A stretch of DNA of 64,000 bases from Ophelia neglecta (lineage: Eukaryota). Positions 8,161-40,508 of the stretch are shown here, one piece after another (positions within the stretch are counted from its first letter, which is position 1; the number at the start of each line of letters is the position of its first letter). The notes below the pieces were generated by a model that made no database searches, was not told the DNA's origin, and worked only from the letters and a program-made list of their open reading frames with translations. The position numbers and the translations under genes are program-made. The stretch lies in assembly GCA_965285935.1 (NCBI GenBank), contig OZ260667.1:50902001-50966000 (forward strand). Reading direction: 5' to 3'.

Positions 8161-11100
8161 ATTAGCTACATTTTTTGGAACCTTTTTATCATAAGCGAAG
8201 CCTAAACCGCCCCCGCAAGCCAAAACACACGCTCAAGCGCGACGAAGACCCGTCGACATCGTTTGGTGGCGTGTCTTTCTCCAGGACTTCAATGGGAGAC
8301 GAAACGCTCACGCCATCAACCGTGAACAGAAGGCCATCGAGGTCCACAGTTGCACCCCGGCATCGGGCAAAATCTTCGAGAGTGACTGGCTGTTCCCTAC
8401 TGAGGCCACTGACCTCCCAGCTGCTCAGAATCACCACATCAACTACAAGGAGGCGTTGTCAGTTTTTATCGCTGCCCGTCGGATGGGACACTTCTGGGCT
8501 GGCTGAGAGGTGACGATCTTCACGGACAACCAAGCAGCCAGATGTATGATCAACAACGCCAACACCAGCATGCCTTGACGTCGCCACAATTTAGATAACA
8601 TTGTCCTTAGCCTGCATCACCATAACTCTCTGGTTTTAATCCTCCAACAGGTTGCAGCTCTCGGGAGGCAAAGAGGCACCTCGCGCAAAGCCTACAGGTC
8701 ACAGATGAAAGCCTATCTATACGTCAGTGACTCTTTCGCATATAGACCTGTGCCCTCCCGAGTCGGCGCCAAGTCCCAATTCACGGAGGCCCTGCCCTCC
8801 ACTACCACCTAATAACTGGCTTTGGAACTTATGTATCATGTTACCTGCTGATTAATCTGATGGATTTCGTGCTTACTATGTCATTGACCAAGTTAGTTTT
8901 GCCAGTAAGCCATGACTTTTTATTGAGTAACGTGAGGTTAAACAGACACTAATAGTATTACTACGAGATGTCGGCGCTGCGAGTAATGTTATATAGCTGA
9001 CCCTGCAACAGGAAGTTGTCTCAGAAATGAATAGTTTAGGCGCCTTGGTATACTTTGACAAGAACCAACTGTATCGTATTTCTTCTTTAATAAATTTATA
9101 CTTAATTAATTTTAACTGTTGAACATTGAAAGTCCGTTAGCCTTTCAAATTCATGCCTAAATATGCCCGTATAATTCACCTCCTTCTCTATTAGGCCTAT
9201 GTTATAAATAAGGCCACTTTGATATTTTACTGCATTCTGGCCTTGAACCGAAATCAAATTAAAATCTTCTCCTCCTAATACACTGCTTATATCTTGTTAT
9301 TTTTACCACAAAGACTATGGCGACCGACCCTTTACCAAATTTCTACAAAACCTAGTGAGTGGACGTAAATTGACAAATCGGAGTCTAATCATAATTTTCT
9401 ATAGTGTATGATATTTGCTAATTACCAACTAATAGCTTAACCGTCCAAGATGGCTACATCGTATGTTTTGACCACCAATAGTAAATCATAAATGAGGGGT
9501 CTTATGTCACTTAATTTTGACGTGACTTATTTGCTACATCATATTCAGTAAACAGCTTTTGGTGTTTGTACAGTGTAAGACAGACACACCAAGTTTATTA
9601 ACAACTACATGTATACAGGATAAGGAATAAATTAAAGGTTAGGGGTGGCATAATTTGGTCTTTGACAAATCTGACTTGTCTATTAAATTATTCGTGGCAG
9701 AAATTATGATAAAAAGATAGTAGACTGGGGGAAAATGTTTGATCAATATACACATGATGAAACATATATGCAAAGCGTATTAATCGATTAATTTAATTAT
9801 GAGTTTAGGCAACATACTTTGGTGGTGGTGGCCAAGCCGAGATGATCAGACAGCATTGGCCTTAGCGACTGGTATTATTGGCGGCCATGTGTTCCCAAAT
9901 CCTCGACAAACCGATAAACGACGCGTCTAGACTCTAATAAAAAATACGTTCTATTCAAACTTCAAACAGAAATAATTTAAAATAATATAAGTTTGATCCT
10001 AAGTACTTGTACCTTGTATTCCAATTTTGTAATTTATTGTTTCCCAATGAGTTCAACTAGCACTTTAGTTATTAACTTATGATTGCCACAAATGGCTTCA
10101 TTTGTTTAACAAATTGAAAGACAAACGTTTTACTCTTTTTTTTTACATAACAGGGTGACAACGCACAAAATGAAATAAATACTACAATCATATCAATACA
10201 GAGTATAGTTTATTGCTGTTTTGTAAACCCAAATATACAGGTGGGATTCTTTAAAAACACTATATCTGAACATACATTGTAGGTGTAATTGAATACAAAA
10301 ATAGAATGACTATAATAGGGTGACAATTTCATGGAAAATGATTCAAATGATGCTCATATCTATTCCAGTAATGTACGTACCATGAGAGTGGATCACTCAA
10401 GCTTGTTATGTGTCCTTTGGCAATAGGATTTTAATCTTATTTTAGTATGAAAACTCAAAATTCTAAACATAAGACATAAACCCTTTTTATATTTTGCCAG
10501 TGGACTTGATGGGTTTTTTTCAATGGTGCATGGTGGGGAATATTTCACAACTTGAGTGCATATGCTCCTGACACATTTTAAGGAGAAAGCATGAATAATA
10601 ATGGTATATATGCTTATGTGGCACAGAAGTTAACTAAAAGCTAATTTGTAAAGTGAATGATAATAGGCATGATCATATCAAATAAATGTGGTTACCGCAC
10701 ATGGTTGAATGATACAAATGAAAGTCATATATATATATCGTACCAGACTTTCCCCTTAGCAGTACTTGAACATTGATAGGAACTGATAAAATCTCATAGT
10801 TAATACAATGAAATTATAAACATCTGGAAAACATTTTCAACTAAAAGTATCTGAATGATACCCATGATCTGAAAATGTGATGAAATCAAAGTGTCCCATG
10901 CGAAGAAAACATTGGCAGTTTATATAAGAATGACACAAAGTACTTGTACAATTAATCAAAAATAGTTAAAAATTTAAAATATCAAGATCAAAAGTTGATC
11001 AGATATAAGAAATTATATAATTTGTTTTAACAGGAAAGACACAAACTAGTGGTACAGTTGTTAAAAAATAATTGAACATTTACAATATCTTGATAAAAAT

Positions 11101-12082
11101 GGACCATGTATATGAAATTATGTAATTTGTCAAAACTATATAATTAAAAAGAAAAATAATATTCGCCCGTATGATGTGTACATTGTCCTATAATCTACAA
11201 TTTAGCTAAAAAATATTAACTATTAATCAAGGTGGATTAACGATTTATCACATTACTTAAGCAAGCATTATATAATATATATATCTGTACAATAATTAAG
11301 TCAGTTTGTTACAAAAATATCAACGTTTAGCACCTGATTGGTTTTATGAAGTTTGAAAATATCTTACATTTCTCCCTGTAATAATTTGCTAAAATAAAGT
11401 TTGTCAAAAGGCGCATTATTTTGGTCCGTATCAATGTATACATCACTTGAATACATTGTAACTCAAAAATGCATTGTTCCCGTTAAGCCTATGTACGTTT
11501 ACATTGCAAAATAGCAATATTCACACTTCTACTGTTATACTTTGCGAAATTATTCATATATCTTTGCAAGTATTGAATAAAGCATGTAAGTGAAGTCATC
11601 TGGTGTTTGTAATAAATTGAAATCTTTGACACAACATACTTCCAGAGCGATGCAGATGATGGGTTTCTCTTGGAAAGTCTGAAACATGCCACTTTTCCCA
11701 ATTTAAAAAGAAAATAATATTGATATTATTTCAGGTGTACTTGCCCTTCTGGATACACTTTTTTTTAAATAAAATTCGTCGTTGTAATCATAACCGTGCT
11801 GTCTTATATGGTCCTATAATGTATATTTTTTGTACCAGCCAGTCTCCTAATTAATGAGCACGTTTGACAAGAATTTATAATCTGAAACAGACTCAATTGC
11901 ATGCCCCATACACGGGGTTGACGATATGGCACTAAAACACTTTTTTGAAAAGAGGTAATTGAACTTAACTCCGTCATAGCCAATTGTTGATGTTAATATA
12001 AATTTGAGAAGTAGCTGTTTCTAGAAGCTTTAGATTTTTGCTACATTAGAATTCGGGACTTGAGATTAATCCTAGACTCATT

Positions 12083-12297
12083 CTACGCAAAGAACCCCCA
12101 GACGAAAGCGGCTACGACCATCAAAATAACAGCGTTTATGTTGGCGAGTTTTCTGTGGAGGGGGACTTCATCCAAGGAGCAGTGTTTTGCTTCCATTGCC
12201 AATTGTTCCTCCTCAGTGATATCTAGCTCGGGGTGCTTCTCAATTCCACAGATCCATTGAATGGCTGTTTTGTACCATGGAAGCTTCCTCTCAGGTT
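12083..12297 (-). CDS. SLC5A last coding exon ([18 protein letters not shown]...AAFVWGFFA*)
   Basis: 215 nt, TTTCAG acceptor, TAG stop at 12085-12083. Confidence 0.93.
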
Positions 12298-15200
12298 CTG
12301 AAAGGAATCCGAAACAAACATGAACGTACAATTATCGGTTTCAAGTTATCACTCAAACAAAAAAATACCAAATTGATGTGAAAAGCCCTTTTGAGCCATG
12401 AATCTCTTTCAGTGGTTAAATCTTGGTGGTTCTTGAAGGAAGGTCCCGGGGGTAAGCAACCCCTTTAGAGGGGGACAAGGAATCAGAGCTCCGCTTTCTA
12501 TTCATAAATTGCTCATTATCAGCTTCTAGAATGAGGGGGACGGTTTTTTAACAAACCCAACCCTTTGGAAATTATATGGGTATTTAACAAAAAATATTAC
12601 ACCAAACACTAAAATGTTTGTTTCCTTATCGTACCTGGCTCTACGTTGACAGAGCTGGCCGTACGAGCCTCACTGAGATCCTGACTACCAGCGTTGTATG
12701 CCCGGTTGTCCCTGCCATTCTCTGCCATCTCCAGGCTGTTACTACCTTTTTTCGCTCTACTGTCCTCCTCAAGGTCCACGCGCTCGGCAGTGTTGTAGCG
12801 GTCAAGGTATGTCAAACGTACCAGCTAAAAAACAAAACATGCGTGTCAGACCAACGTTAAGAGCCCTTAACCAATCAGACATAATATATGTGTGTCTCCG
12901 TGGATAAACAAGGTCTCAACCAATCATATACGTGTATCATATTTGACTAAAGATAGATGATTGTTAATATATTATGTCTGGGCGTAATTTTGAATAATAA
13001 ATTTTGTTGACAGAGAAACGATAATGTTGCAACATTTTAAAATCTCTGATAAACTTTCTCATGTATACAACTTCTGCATGTATATTTGCGGTTCGCTATT
13101 TGTCATACTATGTCCTGAAATATGGGTTATATATCCGCCACGATTCTGAAGTATTTAGAAGCTTTGTACGTGGGCATATTTCAACCTAGCACATGTCATT
13201 TTGCAATTTTTTGCAACATCATCAAGGAATACAAGGGATATATGAGGTAAGCAAACTAAATAAATGCAATCCTTTCCCATGGGTTTAACGGAAGTTGAAT
13301 ATTTCTCTTTCATACTAGTAACCATTCAAGTATAAATTGTCTACGCCGGTACTTACATATTTCTCATCAATTGGTTTGGTCAATAAACTGATGACAATGG
13401 TACATATGGTTGTTATACCCCACAGGAGTATTCCAAAGTGCAGGTAGTGAACCTAGAAACAAAACATAATATCAATTAAACACTTTAAACTAACATTATA
13501 TATAAGCATTGTAAATTACAGTAGGCTTGATGAATGTATGTATTACAAAAAAAAATGTGTCGTACATGACTGTCTGGCTCAGAGTTATTCTTTGTACCAT
13601 GTTAATATATATATAGAGGGAGCTTATTCTGCAGTTTTATTTGTGTTATACTGTTACCTTAGAGATGATAGCGGGTCGCGTGTCCTCCTCGCCACAGGCC
13701 GCGGCGGGGTAGGCAGACTCCCAGGCAAACCTGACAATGCCCACCAACAGACCGATCATTAATCCCCAGAAAGCTCCCTGGAATGTACAATCAACTCAAA
13801 CGATGATAAGATGCTACAAATGCACTGTCAAGATTCAAGACAAAGAATTTGTCATAGTTGGTGACTTTAATGTTTACTGACATTTTACCTGTTCCCGATG
13901 AAGAAAATAATTAGATAATAGATAGAAGATATTATATATGCAAAATATTTCAACAACAGTATTGACCTTCTCATTGGTTCTCTTCCAGAGCACAGCCAAT
14001 AGATACACAGCACATATGGGCGGGGCTAGGAAACTGGTCACTGATTGGATGTAATGGAAGAGCTCGCTGAAGTTCTTTACGATTGGAATCCATGCGATGC
14101 CGATTCCCACCATTACCAAAACAAAAACTCTACGAAATGAAGATTAATGCAGAATCATTAGTTATTGACTTCAATACCTTCATACATAAATTATAGTTAA
14201 CTTTTAGTTAAAATTAAGATGCTGGAAAAGCCTACTTCATTTGGCCAACTTGAAGGATAGTATGTAGATTTTATTATTTGCACTACAAGTCTATTAACTG
14301 TTAGGGGGCTGGAGATTTGTGTATTGGTGTGTGTTGAGTAATGGCTGTTGGTTCCCTATGATTTCGGACTGATTTAATTGTCTGCTCTCAATAACTGATT
14401 AGGCACTGTCTGTCTGTCGTCCTCTCCCGACTTATAGCCTAGCTTTTCTCAACGAACGCTCATACAGCAGTTGCAAAAATCACCCACCTGCCAACAATCA
14501 TAATCTCTGTGTCGCTAGCGTTCTTTCTAATTCGGGTCCAGATGTCCAGAGTGAAGATGGTGGACGAGGAGTTGAAGATTGACGTCAGGGAAGACATCAG
14601 CGCCGACATCATCACGGCCAACATCAGGCCTCTGGCTCCTGAAAAACAAAGATATATATTACAATTACACTATACATTTCGGCACTATATTTAGCTCTGC
14701 ACTTTTAGGCGCTGCGCTGTTAGAGAACATTAGCATGTCCCTACCTTAACCCACGTGACAACCTGCTCGCAATGCAGAACCAAAGCAAAAGCGCCGAATC
14801 ACACCGCGCAACGCCGAATACAACACCCAAGACATGGTTGCTGTTCAAAATTACAGACAAGCAACAAGCCTCAATTTTTCAGGGGACACAATAACATAAT
14901 CCATTAATAAAAATACACGCAAACAGTAGACCTGCATTATTAGTGGGAAGGACTTCGGAGATAAACTTCTGAATTGATTGTGTTCAATTAATATAAACCG
15001 GTTATGCTAATTTGGAGATTCGGGAGTAATTTCTCTACCCCTAATTTTCAGCAGCCTCCTCCCCAGGTATAAAGAAGCTAAGGATTACAAGGTGTGTGGT
15101 TTTTCGGTCTATGAAAAATCCCGAAATTATATGGATGTAGTTATAAGTTAATTATATGTTATTAGAGAGAATGTCCACAGCTGGCTTACCAGAAGGTAGT

Positions 15201-18200
15201 AGTTCTATGACCAGCGTGGGGTAGGCAATGTTGGTACAACCAGATCTGATGCCACACACTGCATCGCAAACATCCGGTTCAGCGCACGCAATAGTATCTG
15301 TAATATAAAAACCCAAATAAAAACATGAAATTTGTTAGAATGTAATAGGCTTGTTATCAAAAATATCATACTGGAAAAATATTTCAGACTGATAAAGATG
15401 AAAATTCACTCGGGACTAAGAAAAGGTCCTTTATAATAATGCATCGAGTTTCATCTCATCTAACCTTCCCCAACCCCGAGCTGGAAATTATTTCTGGACA
15501 ATACCCCTAAAATAACTTTATCTTAGTTCGTGTTTTCCCTATGCTAGACCACAGTCCATTGTTCCATTTTAAGAGAGTTCAAGAATTTACAGAAGTGTCC
15601 GTCCACAAACCGTGGTGCCCAGCCCACGGGACCAAACTGACTCTTTACGTAGATGGCTGGGCCCCACGTGCGGCTTACGAACACGTCAGAAAAATCTAGA
15701 ACTCTCTATCCTTCTAAGTCTCGTCACCTGGGAAGAGGATTCTGCTGATCATTCCTGGTACCACAATGAGCCACATGGGCAATATTTTAAGGTATCCGGC
15801 CAGAACACATCCTCCCTTGGCGTGGGACAGATCTTTAGAGGCAAGCGCTCGCTGGACTATCACCTATACGAAACACGTAAATAGTCAAAACCGTAGTCTG
15901 ATAAACTTATAGGTCTATATGCTATCAAAAGTAGTATATTTTAATATGTGCGTACATTTGGTAGAATTAATGAATATGTATAAAATATTAATTACCAACA
16001 GAAAATGAAAACATAGCTAGTTAGATAGTAATATGGCTCATAGATATTTACATGTTGAGTACTACCCCTTAATATATGTATATAAATATATAAAGAATAC
16101 GGAATACATATAATATTTTAAGTTGGAAAATATCTTAACAATTCATCCCAAGGATATTTTTATAATAAAAACATCAGGCCACTGAATATTTACTTGTATA
16201 CAATAAGAGTTCCAGTGGCCAATGCATACACTATTTGTTGAGGTGAACTTTTAACAGAGCAAAGAAAAAATACGAAGACTAAAGTGGCCGCAAGAGAAGA
16301 AGAGGCTTGGTATCACAGCGGCCTGTAGCAACACTGATACACAGTTACTAGCGGTTAGAACCCGTGAACAACTTAATAATTCAATTGTACAGTCAGAGAA
16401 AAAAAGTTAAGAACCTCACAAATGAATGGATAGATTATAAGAAGCGGTAAAGTAAGCCTAGTCCCTAAGACATCTTACAGTGTTAAACAGCAAAGAAGTT
16501 AACTTGAGTAGGTACCCATTCCCTTAAAAAGTGCCCTCCAAAAAAAATAACCCCGTGGTAGTTAGAAAGCAGTAGACACTAGCTGTAACAGGACTAGTTT
16601 ACTTATACTTATATTAAACAAAACCAAGCTGATAAGACTCCTTTGAATTCAGAAACCGAACACTATATACTATTATACATCGATGTAGGCAGATAAAAGC
16701 AAGCAGGCATTGACATATTCACTTTTCAGGACTGCCTATATTCGGCGCTGCTTAAAAACGCTGCGATATAGTACCTAGTTATATAGACACGCCCTATGTT
16801 CTCAATCACGTGACCGGCCAATCCCACGCGAGAACAACAGTCATACAGACAGCAGTGCGCACCCAGCGTAGGTTACAATTAATTAAACCAGTCCGCTCCT
16901 GTGCTTTCATAAGACGCGTTTGTTTTACAACTCTAGTGCACCCGAGTTCCAACTAGACCCAAATAAATGGCTAGATTTACACCCCGCGTCCTTCTTATTA
17001 TGTCAAGGGCATATGGCGCCTTTCGGGGACCAAACTAGATTTTCAACAACTTGCAGCTTGTTAACCAATAAGAAAACGGTTTGGTTGAATCTAGCCGTGT
17101 TGTTTCCTTTCGAAAGTTTTTCTTTAAACTAACCCAGGGGCATGCGCTCAGACCCCTACTGAACTCTACTCGCGTTGACTGAAGTTCAACGGTGAATGGA
17201 ACACGCCCCTGGGCTGAATGCCATCTGAACCGATGAACCAACATGGCGATATTTTACGTTTCATTTTTAGGCATTTGTTGCAATAAAGACTTGTAGATTC
17301 CAAATAAGCCTTATGATATTTTAGTTACGATGTTATTTGATAGTAGTAAGAGCACCTGGTCGGTACACCAGTACCAGACTCCGGACACGGTGAGGCCGAA
17401 GATCACTCCAGGCCAGGGCAGAGCGTCGTCGACGGGCCGGAGGAGGTGGAAGGCCTGGTCTGAGGGCTTGGCGCAGTGCTCGGGCGTGCTCGAGTTCTCA
17501 GATATGGTGACAGACGCCAGGGGCCAGGCATGTTTGAGCGCCTCGTAGCCGCCCACCCGCATTGTGGCTAAAATGAGCCAACAGGGGGAGGTAATGTTTC
17601 ATTTTGTGATGTTTCATTCTATATGGCTATTCGGTGGAATCGATGTGTCTAACTTCTCTGTCACAATGATTCCTTTACGCATTACCTTGAAATCAATGTA
17701 ATCGAGATTGCGAGGACTTCAGAGTAATCTTGCTGAGGTGTTTTTGCATGCCCATGATATGGCATTGAGTATTTGTCAATGTTAACATGCAGAATATGGT
17801 GTGGGATCTTCATGCGGGTGGTACTTTGATTAATGGTGAATGGTAAATTTGATGAATTGCATTCATCTAGTGCGTCTAATTAGAGACCGAAATGTGAAAA
17901 GCATTTGATTTATTTTAAATGCGCATATTTATATGAAACAAATAATCACAAAATATCCACATCCCTATTATGGTTTCATTTCAATAAACCAGTGCATAAA
18001 CAACATCGTGTGGCAAACTTTCTTCCTGATTTGTATTTTAGCAGTTCCTGATTTGCATTTTAGCAGTTCCTGATTTGTATTTTACCAGTTCCGGGATAAT
18101 CATTAATGCCAAGTTCTAGCTGCCACCCAATGAAGGCCTATCCTTACTCGAACAAATAGAACACTAGGTACAGCTGTCTATAATAGGTTGACAACATCGA

Positions 18201-21200
18201 TGTCTTGGGAGAATACTTCAGGTCTTCCGATTGAATATGTTTCGAATTTTGCCACTGGTGTTAACTTAGCCTACACCATAATAGGCGTATTTGACCTAAT
18301 GAGTTGAGCATTATATTTATGCTGTGCGCTTTTCAGAAAGCTTGTTTGTATACATAGGCCTATATGTGCGCGAGACTGTTATATAAGCAAATATAATAGG
18401 CTACTATAGTCACAGCACACATTTGACAAAAGACAGTGCCTCCTGTCTCTCTTTCTACAGCGAGGCCAGCATATTTTCGTCAAGTATTTCTACGTACTGG
18501 TTCTCCATGAAAGCAAATTCTAACTTAATTATGCGACTGTTTATGAGGCCATCATAGCTCTTTTCAATGCTAAAGCAAAGGCCCGTTTAGCCCCCTACTT
18601 GGTCAGTGCACCAATACCAGATGCTGCTGATGGTGAGGCCGAAGACGACTCCCGTCCAAGGAAAGTCTGGGTCTGAAGCCGGACGGACCAGGTGCATGGA
18701 GCGCTCCGGGGGTATACCACAGTAGTCGGTCCACGGGTCGGGGTACGTATAATTCTGGATGGTGTAGTTAGAAGCCGCCCTCACATAGGTGTGACTAAGG
18801 TTCTCGTAGTTGCCTACCTCTATGAGGCCTTGATTTTTAGTAAGGGTTAGAAGTGAAAATTAGTGTTAGGCAAATAGATACTTGAATACTGAAGCGGGGG
18901 GGGGGGGGGGGGGGAGGGGGTAGCAATATTTTCTTTAAAAGTTCAGGTGTTCAGCAATCGAATGATGACTTTATAGTTGAAATGTTTAGTCATATTTTCC
19001 ACAGACGGGCAGTGCCAAGTTATATATCCATGAACGTTATTTTGGCAAATAAAATACGCATGCGCAGTTGAATAAAAGCACGTTAGTTTAGGCACAATTG
19101 AGCTTCCATGGTTAAGATATAGACAAGTTCAAGCAAACAAAACGTTATCAAAAAACAGGTATATAGTTATACATGCGTTAATGTTAATGGTAGGAGAGTG
19201 AAAATTAGTATTAGGCTTCCTAGCGTTAGTCAACACCTCAGCAAAACATGCATGAATCATAGGCCTATTTGTAATATATATAAACATAAATAAACACTAT
19301 AAAGAGTGAAAAGAAAAGTAAGAGAATATATTAATTTCCTTCCGATGACTGAAATAGAAAGCTCAAAGAAGAAAACCGGTTATTGAAGACCAAGTTTGGT
19401 ACACGTATGGAACCTATAGGCCTACTGTTAGAATGCCGAAGCTGAAATAACCTGAAAGCGAAGGTGTGTATCACTGGGTTAGGACAAAGAATAGCAGAAA
19501 ATAATGTTAGTTGTGAACACAAGAAAATTGAGTTTTGTATACAGGTCAATATAGTTATAAAAGCAAAAATATAGTTGGACAAAGTGTGTTAGTTAATTTG
19601 TTGGCAAGTCAACATCAGTGAAAATTGGAGAAACTTGTCACGCATAGATGTCCCCAATTTCTAAAAATGGAGAAAGCGAAGGCTACCAGTTTACTGAAGA
19701 AGTCAGAAAGGCAAAAGTAAGGCGGAAACACCAACCAATCAGACAGTGTTAGAGTTCGGACGTCCGTCCACTAGGAGGAGGCATTGGCAGTCATCCAATA
19801 ACCTAGAATGTCACACAATGAGCTCAGCCAATCACGACTGGAGTCACATAATCACCTGATCGGAGCACCAATACCAGATTGAGGAGATGGTCAAACCGAA
19901 CATGATACCGGGCCATGGCAGTCCTGGGTCTTCGGCCGATCGAAACAGGTGGAAGGAATTCCCTGGGGGCGTACCGCAATCTTTGTACGAATAGTTCTCA
20001 TATCTAGGGGCATCTGCGTTTTCTTGGTACAACCTAGTCTCGTTGGAGACGGCGCCTAAATACTTCTGTGTAACTCCTTGATAGCCGCCTACCTTCAGAA
20101 GACCTACATAAAATGGCGGACATCACAAATATCAGAAAACCATGCAGTGCATCATACAATACAATCCATTCAATTTGGTAATTTATTTGACCACGGTATA
20201 CAGATTTACAATTGTCATGATTTTCCAGATACGTTGTTAATAGTGTGCAAAGGTATATGCATGCATTAGGTCTAGTGAACAGTTCATCTATGTACAGTCA
20301 TTCTGCTCAAGAGAATGGTTCGAATTAGACATTTCTGAAGTTTTTCTAAAAGAAACAACGTTAAAAATTAACGATAGGCACTTTCGGCTGCTGCATTTAT
20401 CTTCTTTGTTTTTTTTCTCAATTGGTTTCAATCACTGGAACTAGACATTCATATAAAGTGATATACGGTCGGATTCTCTGACAGTGTTGTGAAAGAAGAA
20501 TATTATTTTGTTATATCATCTTCTGACATTAAATGAATTAAATATTTGTGTGCATCGCACAATTATTCCCTTTTCTCGTTTGTACATCAGTATAGGAGAT
20601 AAAGAGTACTACATAAAATAATAATATACTCAAGAATATCTAGGATCTCGAGAGAAAAAATGTGGTCCATTATAATGGTGTATGTGAAATGAGTGCCTCC
20701 AATAGGTGGGTTATGAGGCTCCAGGGGCTGGTCCCAGAACCCCACCCCCCTGAGTGGAGGGTGGGAATGATTGTTTCCTCCGGACGGGGTGGGGTGTTAG
20801 GGGGGGGGGAGGGTCCGGAATCAGATTCCAGCCCCTCCCCCTCCTCCGGTAGAGGAGAGACACTCATCTCACATCCTCTATACATGATTTTATACGCGAA
20901 TCTTGGGAAGAAAGGGGTTGTGACCGCCTTGTTCCCAGCATCTGCTGCCAGCCCCAGCCACCCACCACCCACCACCCTCGCCCATGAGATAATATTGGCT
21001 TACTTGCTATCATGAGGTAGATACCGCCTATCAGCATGATGACAGTCTGAATGAAATCGGTCCATATGACAGCAGTCAAACCACCTGGTAAATCACAGAC
21101 AAACACACACTATAATTACTTATATTGATATTTAAGAACAGAGACCCGAACACTTATCATAAGGGCCAACTTGACAAACAACTAGGCTCATGATTATATT

Positions 21201-39200: not shown

Positions 39201-40508
39201 ATGACGTGCCCTCGTACACAAGTATGTTTGGGGCCAATTTTGTTACATTCACAGATTCACGGGTGAATGGGTCAGAAACGACGCCGGTGATAAAAACAGT
39301 CTTTTCATTAACACAACAGCGGGTGTATGCTATTATGAAAAATACTCTACTTTAGGAAATAAATTGACTAAGCAATGAGGTGACTTTATTAATTAAAGCA
39401 ACGAAACGCCAGTGCAAAAAAATTGTATCTTGAAACAGTTATTTATAAGCCTATTGTGTTTCGAGGCTTCAATAAATATATGGGACAAAGGTGTGTTTAT
39501 TTTTATCACAACTTATAAAAAAGGACGTAAACATCTGCAGATGCTGTGCTACAAAGCGGAACGATGCCCAGGTGTATTCAAATAACCTCAATGTACAGCA
39601 GTCGCCAATGTATGTAACCATAGAATATGGAGTCAGTATAGGCCTGGATACATATACATGTACATACAAATAGACACCGGCCGTATTTACTGAAAAGATG
39701 ACCCGCGTCTACTTGTATCTTGTCTACTCGTATGGGCTTTAATTCATACATCTGCATACAGTCTTCATTATATAAAAAACCCTATGAAGGATGTCTTTGT
39801 GGTATCAGATAGTCATAACGCTGGATTTTATTATCGAAAATGTTGTACAACAGGGCTTGTGTCACAATAAAAAGTGTCCGTGCGTGCATGGAATTTCTGT
39901 CGTCTGCTTACGTACACCCACATACTTCTACGTGTATATACTTGTATATACTTAAAGGTGTTGTATACCGCATTGAGCCCTTGTAATTACCTTTCTCTGA
40001 TATCATCTGCTAATTAATCACGACTTAAAGCTACTTGAGTAATTAACGGGTAAGTTTTCCTTTTGCTGGGGAAGGCTTCTTGACAAAAGAAAATACTTTG
40101 GGCTAATCGGTAGTGTAAAAAACCTCTCCAATGAAATGTTCCTTGAGCTCTGTTTGCTATCATTGACATGACAGCATTATTGGCAAACCTGTGAATTATG
40201 ACACTGCATGGGTGTTTGTACTCAAGACACGAGAGTTAAGAAAGTTGCAATTGTACACCATTAACATTGCTAGTTATAAACTTTTTTACCAAAAGAAAAG
40301 ATTTCTTTTTCATTATAGCATTTTGGAAACTTAAGTTTTCTTTAGATCACCCCCGATTTATAACTGAGACATTTTGAATTATGTAGAAATATGTTTAACA
40401 GTGGGAACATATTTGACTTACCCATATTCCGAATGCCATGACAACTGCGAAGTAGGCCACGATGACGCCAATATCCGCACCCGTGATGCTCACCTCGTTC
40501 TTAGCCAT
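12083..40508 (-). CDS. SLC5A sodium/glucose (SGLT-type) cotransporter; 16 exons per mRNA, exon 8 chosen from three alternatives; 679/673/667 aa
   Basis: All exons have GT/AG boundaries and consistent phases. Constant CDS 613+1179 nt plus exon 8 gives 2040/2022/2004 nt. Hallmarks: [52 protein letters not shown], WYWCxDQVIVQR, [10 protein letters not shown]-terminal WICG...FVWGFFA. The specific paralogue (SLC5A1/2/9/10) cannot be assigned by eye. Confidence 0.95.
12635..12824 (-). CDS. SLC5A exon 15 ([21 protein letters not shown]...VNVEP)
   Basis: 190 nt, TTTTAG/GTACGA; cytoplasmic loop with RLT...ERVDL motif. Confidence 0.85.
13357..13452 (-). CDS. SLC5A exon 14 ([32 protein letters not shown])
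   Basis: 96 nt, TAG/GTAAGT. Confidence 0.93.
13658..13777 (-). CDS. SLC5A exon 13 ([40 protein letters not shown])
   Basis: 120 nt, CAG/GTAACA. Confidence 0.93.
13967..14129 (-). CDS. SLC5A exon 12 ([17 protein letters not shown]...[29 protein letters not shown])
   Basis: 163 nt, TAG/GTCAAT. Confidence 0.93.
14488..14638 (-). CDS. SLC5A exon 11 ([34 protein letters not shown]...)
   Basis: 151 nt, CAG/GTGGGT. Confidence 0.95.
15190..15297 (-). CDS. SLC5A exon 10 ([36 protein letters not shown])
   Basis: 108 nt, CAG/GTAAGC. Confidence 0.95.
15728..15863 (-). CDS. SLC5A exon 9 ([45 protein letters not shown])
   Basis: 136 nt, begins in phase 0, TAG/GTGACG. Confidence 0.95.
17356..17567 (-). 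CDS. SLC5A alternative exon 8c (TTMRVGGYE...[42 protein letters not shown])
   Basis: 212 nt (3n+2), TTTTAG acceptor, GTGCTC donor, open frame. Confidence 0.9.
18023..18092. repeat. 22-nt tandem repeat (TTCCTGATTTGTATTTTAGCAG) x3
   Basis: Seen directly in the intron between exons 8b and 8c. Confidence 0.85.
18599..18828 (-). CDS. SLC5A alternative exon 8b (SLIEVGNYE...[43 protein letters not shown])
   Basis: 230 nt (3n+2), AAG acceptor preceded by CTAAC branch-point-like motifs, GTAGGG donor, open frame. Confidence 0.88.
19225..19252 (-). promoter_or_regulatory. Candidate intronic splicing element: UGCAUG + 13-nt stem arm + ACUAAC
   Basis: Sense RNA reads UGCAUG-UU-UUGCUGAGGUGUU-G-ACUAAC; the 13-mer is the exact reverse complement of the sense sequence at 17742-17730. 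Confidence 0.5.
19856..20103 (-). CDS. SLC5A alternative exon 8a (SLLKVGGYQ...[43 protein letters not shown])
   Basis: 248 nt (3n+2), TAG acceptor, GTGATT donor, open frame. Confidence 0.92.
21004..21084 (-). CDS. SLC5A exon 7 ([27 protein letters not shown])
   Basis: 81 nt, CAG/GTAAGC, ends in phase 1. Confidence 0.95.
21583..21688 (-). CDS. SLC5A exon 6 ([35 protein letters not shown])
   Basis: 106 nt, CAG/GTGAGT. Confidence 0.95.
21927..22031 (-). CDS. SLC5A exon 5 ([35 protein letters not shown])
   Basis: 105 nt, TAG/GTAAGT. Confidence 0.95.
23089..23148 (-). CDS. SLC5A exon 4 ([20 protein letters not shown])
   Basis: 60 nt, CAG/GTGAGT. Confidence 0.93.
24610..24714 (-). CDS. SLC5A exon 3 ([35 protein letters not shown])
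   Basis: 105 nt, CAG/GTAAGT. Confidence 0.95.
25117..25380. repeat. Minisatellite, ~8 copies of a 29-32-nt unit (GTCGAGTAGGCCACTGA..ACAAGATAGTGGT)
   Basis: Direct tandem copies with scattered substitutions and no unique spacers. Confidence 0.9.
26485..26663. mobile_element. ~180-bp MITE (CAGTG...CACTG ends, Tc1/mariner-like), dispersed family
   Basis: Ends CAGTGTAACCTG / CAGGTTTCATTG with internal GACCACC/GGTGGTC motifs; homologous to the copies at ~41625-41802 and 52441-54556. Confidence 0.7.
27082..29233. mobile_element. Non-autonomous DNA transposon, 2152 bp, 294-bp TIRs, 6-bp TSD
   Basis: 27082-27375 and 28940-29233 are near-perfect inverted repeats starting CACTGGTAGGACACGATCTGAG. CCTTGT flanks both sides (27076-27081, 29234-29239). 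No transposase ORF. Confidence 0.95.
30433..30501 (-). CDS. SLC5A exon 2 ([23 protein letters not shown])
   Basis: 69 nt, TTTCAG acceptor, GTGAGT donor. Confidence 0.93.
31177..31247 (-). mobile_element. Extremely 5'-truncated LINE 3' end (same family as 52558-54480)
   Basis: AAATCAAAATATTTTATTGAG.AGTTGAGTCTGCTGATATACAAGCTATATACAATGCTCAT is nearly identical to 52567-52626. Confidence 0.85.
40422..40508 (-). CDS. SLC5A exon 1 ([29 protein letters not shown])
   Basis: ATG at 40508, 87 nt, donor GTAAGT; aligns with the SGLT first TM helix (DI.VIV.YF). Confidence 0.88.

Follow-up and report, generated by a model that had tools for sequence, protein, structure and literature searches.

The DNA analyzed here is a stretch of 64,000 nucleotides (nt) from Ophelia neglecta (contig OZ260667.1, positions 50,902,001 to 50,966,000 of the forward strand), which is referred to in its whole length as the window. 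It carries on its minus strand a gene of the SGLT (SLC5A) type, in which three homologous copies of exon 8 lie between a single exon 7 and a single exon 9. These alternative copies are designated exons 8a, 8b and 8c in the order of transcription. The features of the gene are collected in Table 1, with coordinates given as window positions.

Table 1. Features of the SGLT-like gene and of its exon 8 cluster in the window
Feature	Position	Strand	Description
Possible first exon of the SGLT-like gene	40401-40487	minus	tblastn with P0172
SLC5A/SGLT-like gene, from the exon with the GGYFLAGR motif to the stop codon	12086..30501	minus	tblastn with P0172; ~16 exons in order
Exon 7	21004..21084	minus	single copy; phase 1 end, donor GTAAGC
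Exon 8a	19856..20103	minus	248 nt; first alternative copy, with the longest loop; the copy closest to exon 8 of species that have only one
Exon 8b	18599..18828	minus	230 nt; second alternative copy; sister to the second copy of L017
Exon 8c	17356..17567	minus	212 nt; third alternative copy; member of the last-position clade, with its one-residue deletion; Gly at the position aligned to human SGLT1/2 residue 287
Exon 9	15728..15863	minus	single copy; phase 0 start after the acceptor AG

The host gene and its three exon 8 copies

The layout of the gene was obtained by tblastn with a full-length flatworm (Fasciola) SGLT, P0172, which matched each exon once, except for exon 8, which was matched three times. 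Amongst the single-copy exons, exons 9, 11 and 12 matched the Pfam SSF model PF00474 with 26.8, 58.7 and 42.6 bits, respectively (curated cut-off, 22.8), and the exon 8 copies searched alone against Pfam gave no match. Exons 8a, 8b and 8c each aligned to structure chains of human SGLT1 and SGLT2, from residue 222 or 225 to residue 295, with expect values (E) of 1e-10 to 1e-15. Judged by its sequence, the gene belongs to the SLC5A/sodium:solute symporter family and, within it, to the SGLT branch.

The stretch to which the three copies aligned consists of the glycosylated extracellular loop after transmembrane helix (TM) 5 and of the outer half of TM6, a helix lining the sugar site. The W-Y-W core of this helix (WYWC.DQ) is kept in 8a, 8b and 8c, and the copies vary in loop length, in their sequons for N-glycosylation and in the TM6 residues that directly precede the core. 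Opposite residue 287 of the human proteins in the alignment, 8a and 8b have Ser and 8c has Gly. In human SGLT1, T287, Y290 and W291 sit on TM6 in the sugar site (PMC5699082).

Each copy is preceded by AG, is followed by GT, has a length of 3n+2 nt and is open, with no stop codon, when reading begins at its third base. Exon 7 contributes one base, at 21004, to the split codon, and phase 0 resumes at exon 9 (15863). Because every copy is 3n+2 nt long, any product containing two copies or none is predicted to be prematurely stopped, and single inclusion alone keeps the frame. When read in phase 0 behind another copy, 8b has a stop at codon 3 and 8c a stop at codon 55; exon 7 spliced straight onto exon 9 gives nine codons and then a stop at codon 10. 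The steps of 6 aa between the predicted isoforms follow from the lengths of the copies (248, 230 and 212 nt), and the two inter-copy introns measure 1027 and 1031 nt.

Protein identity among the copies is 40-58%, depending on the alignment, and all indels between them are multiples of 3. The protein alignment of the three copies has 25 invariant columns, and third-codon positions are 43-45% identical between copies. No alignment was found when the introns flanking 8a, 8b and 8c were compared. Within the intron between 8b and 8c, a 22-nt unit occurs in three tandem copies (18023-18092).

An earlier note on this DNA, made from its letters, had described three homologous exons between single-copy neighbors, with AG/GT ends, no stops, lengths of 3n+2 nt, a phase 1 start and a phase 0 end, and the coordinates and properties that it gave all hold. 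The exons around the triplet are indeed single, as seen in the flatworm SGLT search, and the positions listed in the conserved motif of that note are the invariant columns of our alignment. Its statement that one copy keeps the frame, and that none or several chained together break it, was confirmed by computing the stops for each such combination.

Selection on the copies and their counterparts in other species

Pairwise comparison of the copies gave a synonymous divergence (dS) of 1.3-1.5, which is near saturation, a non-synonymous divergence (dN) of 0.37-0.49 and a ratio of the two (omega) of 0.24-0.39; in the TM6 half of the copies, omega was ~0.2-0.26. Branch values of omega, obtained by decomposing the pairwise distances by hand and accordingly noisy, were ~0.3 for 8a, ~0.2 for 8b and ~0.5 for 8c. 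Amongst copies compared across species, the proportion of synonymous differences (pS) was 0.66-0.94, which is saturated, versus a proportion of non-synonymous differences (pN) of 0.28-0.38. Polymorphism could be read from three short-read runs of one sample, apparently of genomic DNA, from which contigs had been assembled independently. Five single-nucleotide polymorphisms (SNPs) were found within the copies, namely two synonymous ones in 8a, two synonymous ones in 8b and one non-synonymous one in 8c. The divergence values indicate that every exon 8 copy is under purifying selection.

Open frames resembling the exon 8 copies were found in many public assemblies, and all of these are genomic exon frames, not spliced products. 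Loci in the assemblies of other species are denoted here by L-numbers, and their apparent orthology rests on flanking exons that are 73-88% identical in protein. Between its exons 7 and 9, locus L017 has exon 8 in three copies (200, 215 and 215 nt), L101 has three copies that lie ~240 nt apart (236, 224 and 230 nt), and L019 has two (236 and 221 nt). At L100, exon 7 is followed by an a-like copy, the start of which is undefined, and by a c-like copy of 215 nt; at L002, a c-like copy is located just upstream of exon 9, on a contig that ends before the upstream DNA. AG/GT ends and lengths of 3n+2 nt are common to all copies of L017, L101 and L019 and to the c-like copy of L100. A single exon 8 is present in the apparent orthologues L001, L099, L020 and L022. 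Because some species are single-copy, the distribution indicates that exon 8 clusters have been gained or lost among species.

The relationships of the copies were examined in a tree of 34 rows of exon 8 copies. The last-position copies of the window, L017, L101, L100, L002 and L018 formed one clade (support 87/84), and a one-residue deletion is common to all six of them and absent in the other 28 rows. In a larger tree, a narrower c-type clade consisting of 8c, copy 3 of L017, L018, P0073 and P0078 was recovered with support of 98/81. Exon 8b was sister to the second copy of L017 (support 95/80), and 8a, which has the shortest branch of the tree, was placed nearest to the first or only copies of other species. 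In a comparison of nucleotides, the final 42 nt of 8c match the third copy of L017 with 90% identity, a much closer match than in any other pairing. Because of the multi-copy orthologues in other species, the last-position clade and the shared one-residue deletion, these comparisons, to which we give the most weight, indicate that the cluster is old and that all of its copies are selected.

An alternative view of the origin of the clusters, which does not concern their use, is that each lineage acquired them separately, through repeated events of tandem duplication or gene conversion, in which case the triplet would be younger than it looks and the positional likeness would be convergent. Copy number does range from 1 to 3 among species, and the first copy of L017 falls nearer to the c-type clade than to the a-type. 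Additionally, approximately unbiased (AU) tests, which were underpowered with 76 columns, left a within-species origin of the triplets unrejected (p values of 0.09, 0.11 and 0.30). The constrained trees were nevertheless worse by 9-36 units of log-likelihood (lnL), and separate origins are also opposed by the support for the last-position and c-type clades, by a deletion that is found in the six last-position sequences and in none of the others, and by the dS that the copies have already reached within this genome. Altogether, we consider separate origins unlikely.

A few further sequences touch on the distribution of exon 8 copies. Word-index protein searches with 8b and 8c returned few or no matches. 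Sequence P0029 (MetaClust, 207 aa) is an unplaced open frame in which an a-like copy is followed, 22 residues apart, by a second exon 8 copy; no GT-encoded Val follows the first copy, and the frame may come from a species in which the intron between the copies is very short. Sequence P0033 (313 aa), a predicted protein of another organism, contains a near-exact repeat of the exon 7 and exon 8 segments and looks like a duplication in assembly or annotation, not an old cluster. The Tubulanus isoforms X1 and X2 were considered as exon 8 alternatives and rejected, given that they differ at the N-terminus only and belong to another paralogue. In the single-copy relative L001, large open frames of 209-461 aa, called as genes, lie within introns (11007-12644 and 13844-16820) and may represent a transposon insertion.

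Predicted mutually exclusive splicing

Mutually exclusive exons (MXEs) are predicted where neighboring exons are similar, share the same reading frame, differ in length by steps of 3 nt, have GT-AG ends and lack an in-frame stop (PMC5740500), and the exon 8 cluster has every one of these properties. As is also expected of MXEs, joint inclusion and full skipping are non-productive, and the copies have been retained as coding sequence by selection, in other species as well as here. The locus is probably an MXE cluster in which an SGLT (SLC5A)-type symporter gene offers exon 8 in three versions, with a single one of them expected in each mRNA. It is predicted that, very probably, the gene makes three transporter versions by either/or splicing.

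In the mechanism that we propose, each mRNA would take one of 8a, 8b or 8c between exon 7 and exon 9, and differences between the three transporters would be limited to the part that aligns with residues ~222-295 of human SGLT1/2. Transcripts that contain two copies or none would reach a premature stop, and these products would presumably be removed by nonsense-mediated decay. The choice between the copies during splicing, its regulation and any functional difference between the isoforms are inferred.

Several results weigh against this reading or against the age of the cluster. Besides the single-copy orthologues and the outcome of the AU tests, both given above, these include two properties of 8c: its branch omega is the highest of the three, and its sole SNP (window 17427) turns an otherwise invariant Asp into Asn (D47N). 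Additionally, pairing between docking and selector RNA elements was sought at the locus and none was found, with inverted repeats at chance level, although short or G-U-rich pairings could be missed. A conserved intronic element was sought by comparison with L017, and none was found there.

Some of these results would also fit a gene in which only 8a is a real, constitutive exon and 8b and 8c are pseudo-exons, that is, unused relics of old duplications. Such an explanation would agree with the short branch of 8a and its closeness to exon 8 of species that have just one, with the single copy of several relatives and with a polymorphism in 8c that affects an invariant Asp. However, given that synonymous sites are saturated, copies out of use would no longer have an intact frame, splice sites or motifs, whereas 8b and 8c are open, flanked by AG and GT, 3n+2 nt long and characterized by an omega well below 1. 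Copies at matching positions have been kept in L017, L101, L100 and L019, and both SNPs of 8b are synonymous. For these reasons, we regard the use of 8a alone as very improbable.

No observation in favor of an assembly artefact was found. The chance that the triplet is such an artefact, produced by collapsed or expanded paralogues or haplotypes, is negligible, given that independent short-read contigs cross all three copies (one of them, record 12 of run X2, spans 16420-21100, including exon 7, with ~0.5% differences and no joints), that the copies have diverged to the protein identities reported above and that other species show the same layout.

The earlier note had already read the locus as an MXE architecture, and that reading is supported by every sequence-level property used for prediction, with the splicing itself being predicted. 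The note had also set out which outcomes would speak against it, amongst them neutral evolution of the copies, their loss in relatives and mis-assembly. What was found instead were values of omega, pS and pN that indicate constraint, triplets in L017 and L101, pairs in L019 and L100 (alongside the single-copy loci), and contigs that cross the triplet. The view of an old duplication kept by selection is likewise in agreement with the near-saturated dS between copies, an omega below 1 and the multi-copy clusters of other species.

As to how the exclusive use of one copy might be enforced, frame incompatibility is the one form of splicing control to which the locus points. Steric hindrance, in which the inter-copy intron is too short to be spliced, does not apply to introns of more than 1 kb in the window or to the ~240 nt between copies in L101. 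Incompatibility between U2 and U12 splice sites was not seen either, and every donor is GT and lacks the U12 consensus TATCC. A perfect 13-nt inverted pair around 8b was considered as a pairing element and rejected, as it was reached in 25% of shuffles. In intron 7, a G-rich/C-rich hairpin is found at 20802-20849, and a run of ~20 C (in the RNA sense) at 18890-18919 precedes the 8b acceptor by 60-90 nt. Within exon 8c, 22 nt (17437-17458) are 86% complementary to the G-rich arm of this hairpin. G/C homopolymer tracts are scattered throughout the window, and both the hairpin and its complementarity may be due to chance.

Known exon clusters and vertebrate paralogues

Tandem MXE clusters are known from other transporters and channels, such as SLC25A3, CACNA1C and insect MRP1 (PMC5740500, PMC9741552), and MXE events are enriched in these two classes of protein (PMC9741552). 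The exon 8 cluster shares with them adjacent homologous exons of equal phase, length steps of 3 nt, GT-AG ends and frames that are incompatible if joined. Further points in common are an old origin and a swapped part that is transmembrane or ligand-facing, with the core residues kept. The cluster differs from these systems in its host family, SLC5A/SGLT, in having three copies versus the usual two, and in being known here from genomic sequence. Literature searches on mutually exclusive exons found no description of them in SLC5/SGLT genes. The clusters of Dscam, 14-3-3zeta and MRP1, which are associated with docking-site and selector RNA pairing, likewise consist of three or more consecutive variants from which a single one is selected, as is predicted for exon 8; in contrast to them, no docking/selector set was detected in the exon 8 cluster.

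SGLTs, which serve as drug targets, rank with the most thoroughly studied transporters, and gene duplication is the usual explanation for their diversity. The vertebrate paralogues SGLT1, SGLT2, SGLT3-5 and SMIT (SLC5A1, 2, 4, 9, 10, 3, 11) represent diversity within the same family, and the part of the solved human SGLT1/2 structures that corresponds to exon 8 covers residues 222-295. The boundary between exons 8 and 9, after 'DQ', is identical in the vertebrate-like locus L023. Whereas whole genes vary in vertebrates, the gene described here would vary only in the loop and in the outer half of TM6. The switch between exons could retune substrate choice or affinity through the outer TM6 residues and the extracellular lid, so that one gene would do the work of separate vertebrate SGLT paralogues, and the three-way switch could be ancient and conserved in position across a large invertebrate clade; we put this forward tentatively, as a possibility that is more doubtful than the splicing prediction itself.

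The arrangement, which several species have retained, would amount to a natural exchange among three variants of the extracellular loop and of the outer half of TM6, the sugar-site helix, with no other part of the transporter involved. The three versions can be regarded as ready-made chimeras with which to examine what residues determine substrate selectivity and gating. SLC5A would also join the families of transporters in which tandem exon duplication is used.

The 762 Mb genome contains ~14 further SGLT-like exon 8 loci, none of which is closer than 48% to 8a, and the ~1 kb spacing of the exon 8 copies was found at none of them. Other SGLT-like exon 8 matches that lie 10-19 kb apart (G000 C9:22577931-22597462 and C9:41244628-41268489) look like tandem whole-gene paralogues, not exon clusters.

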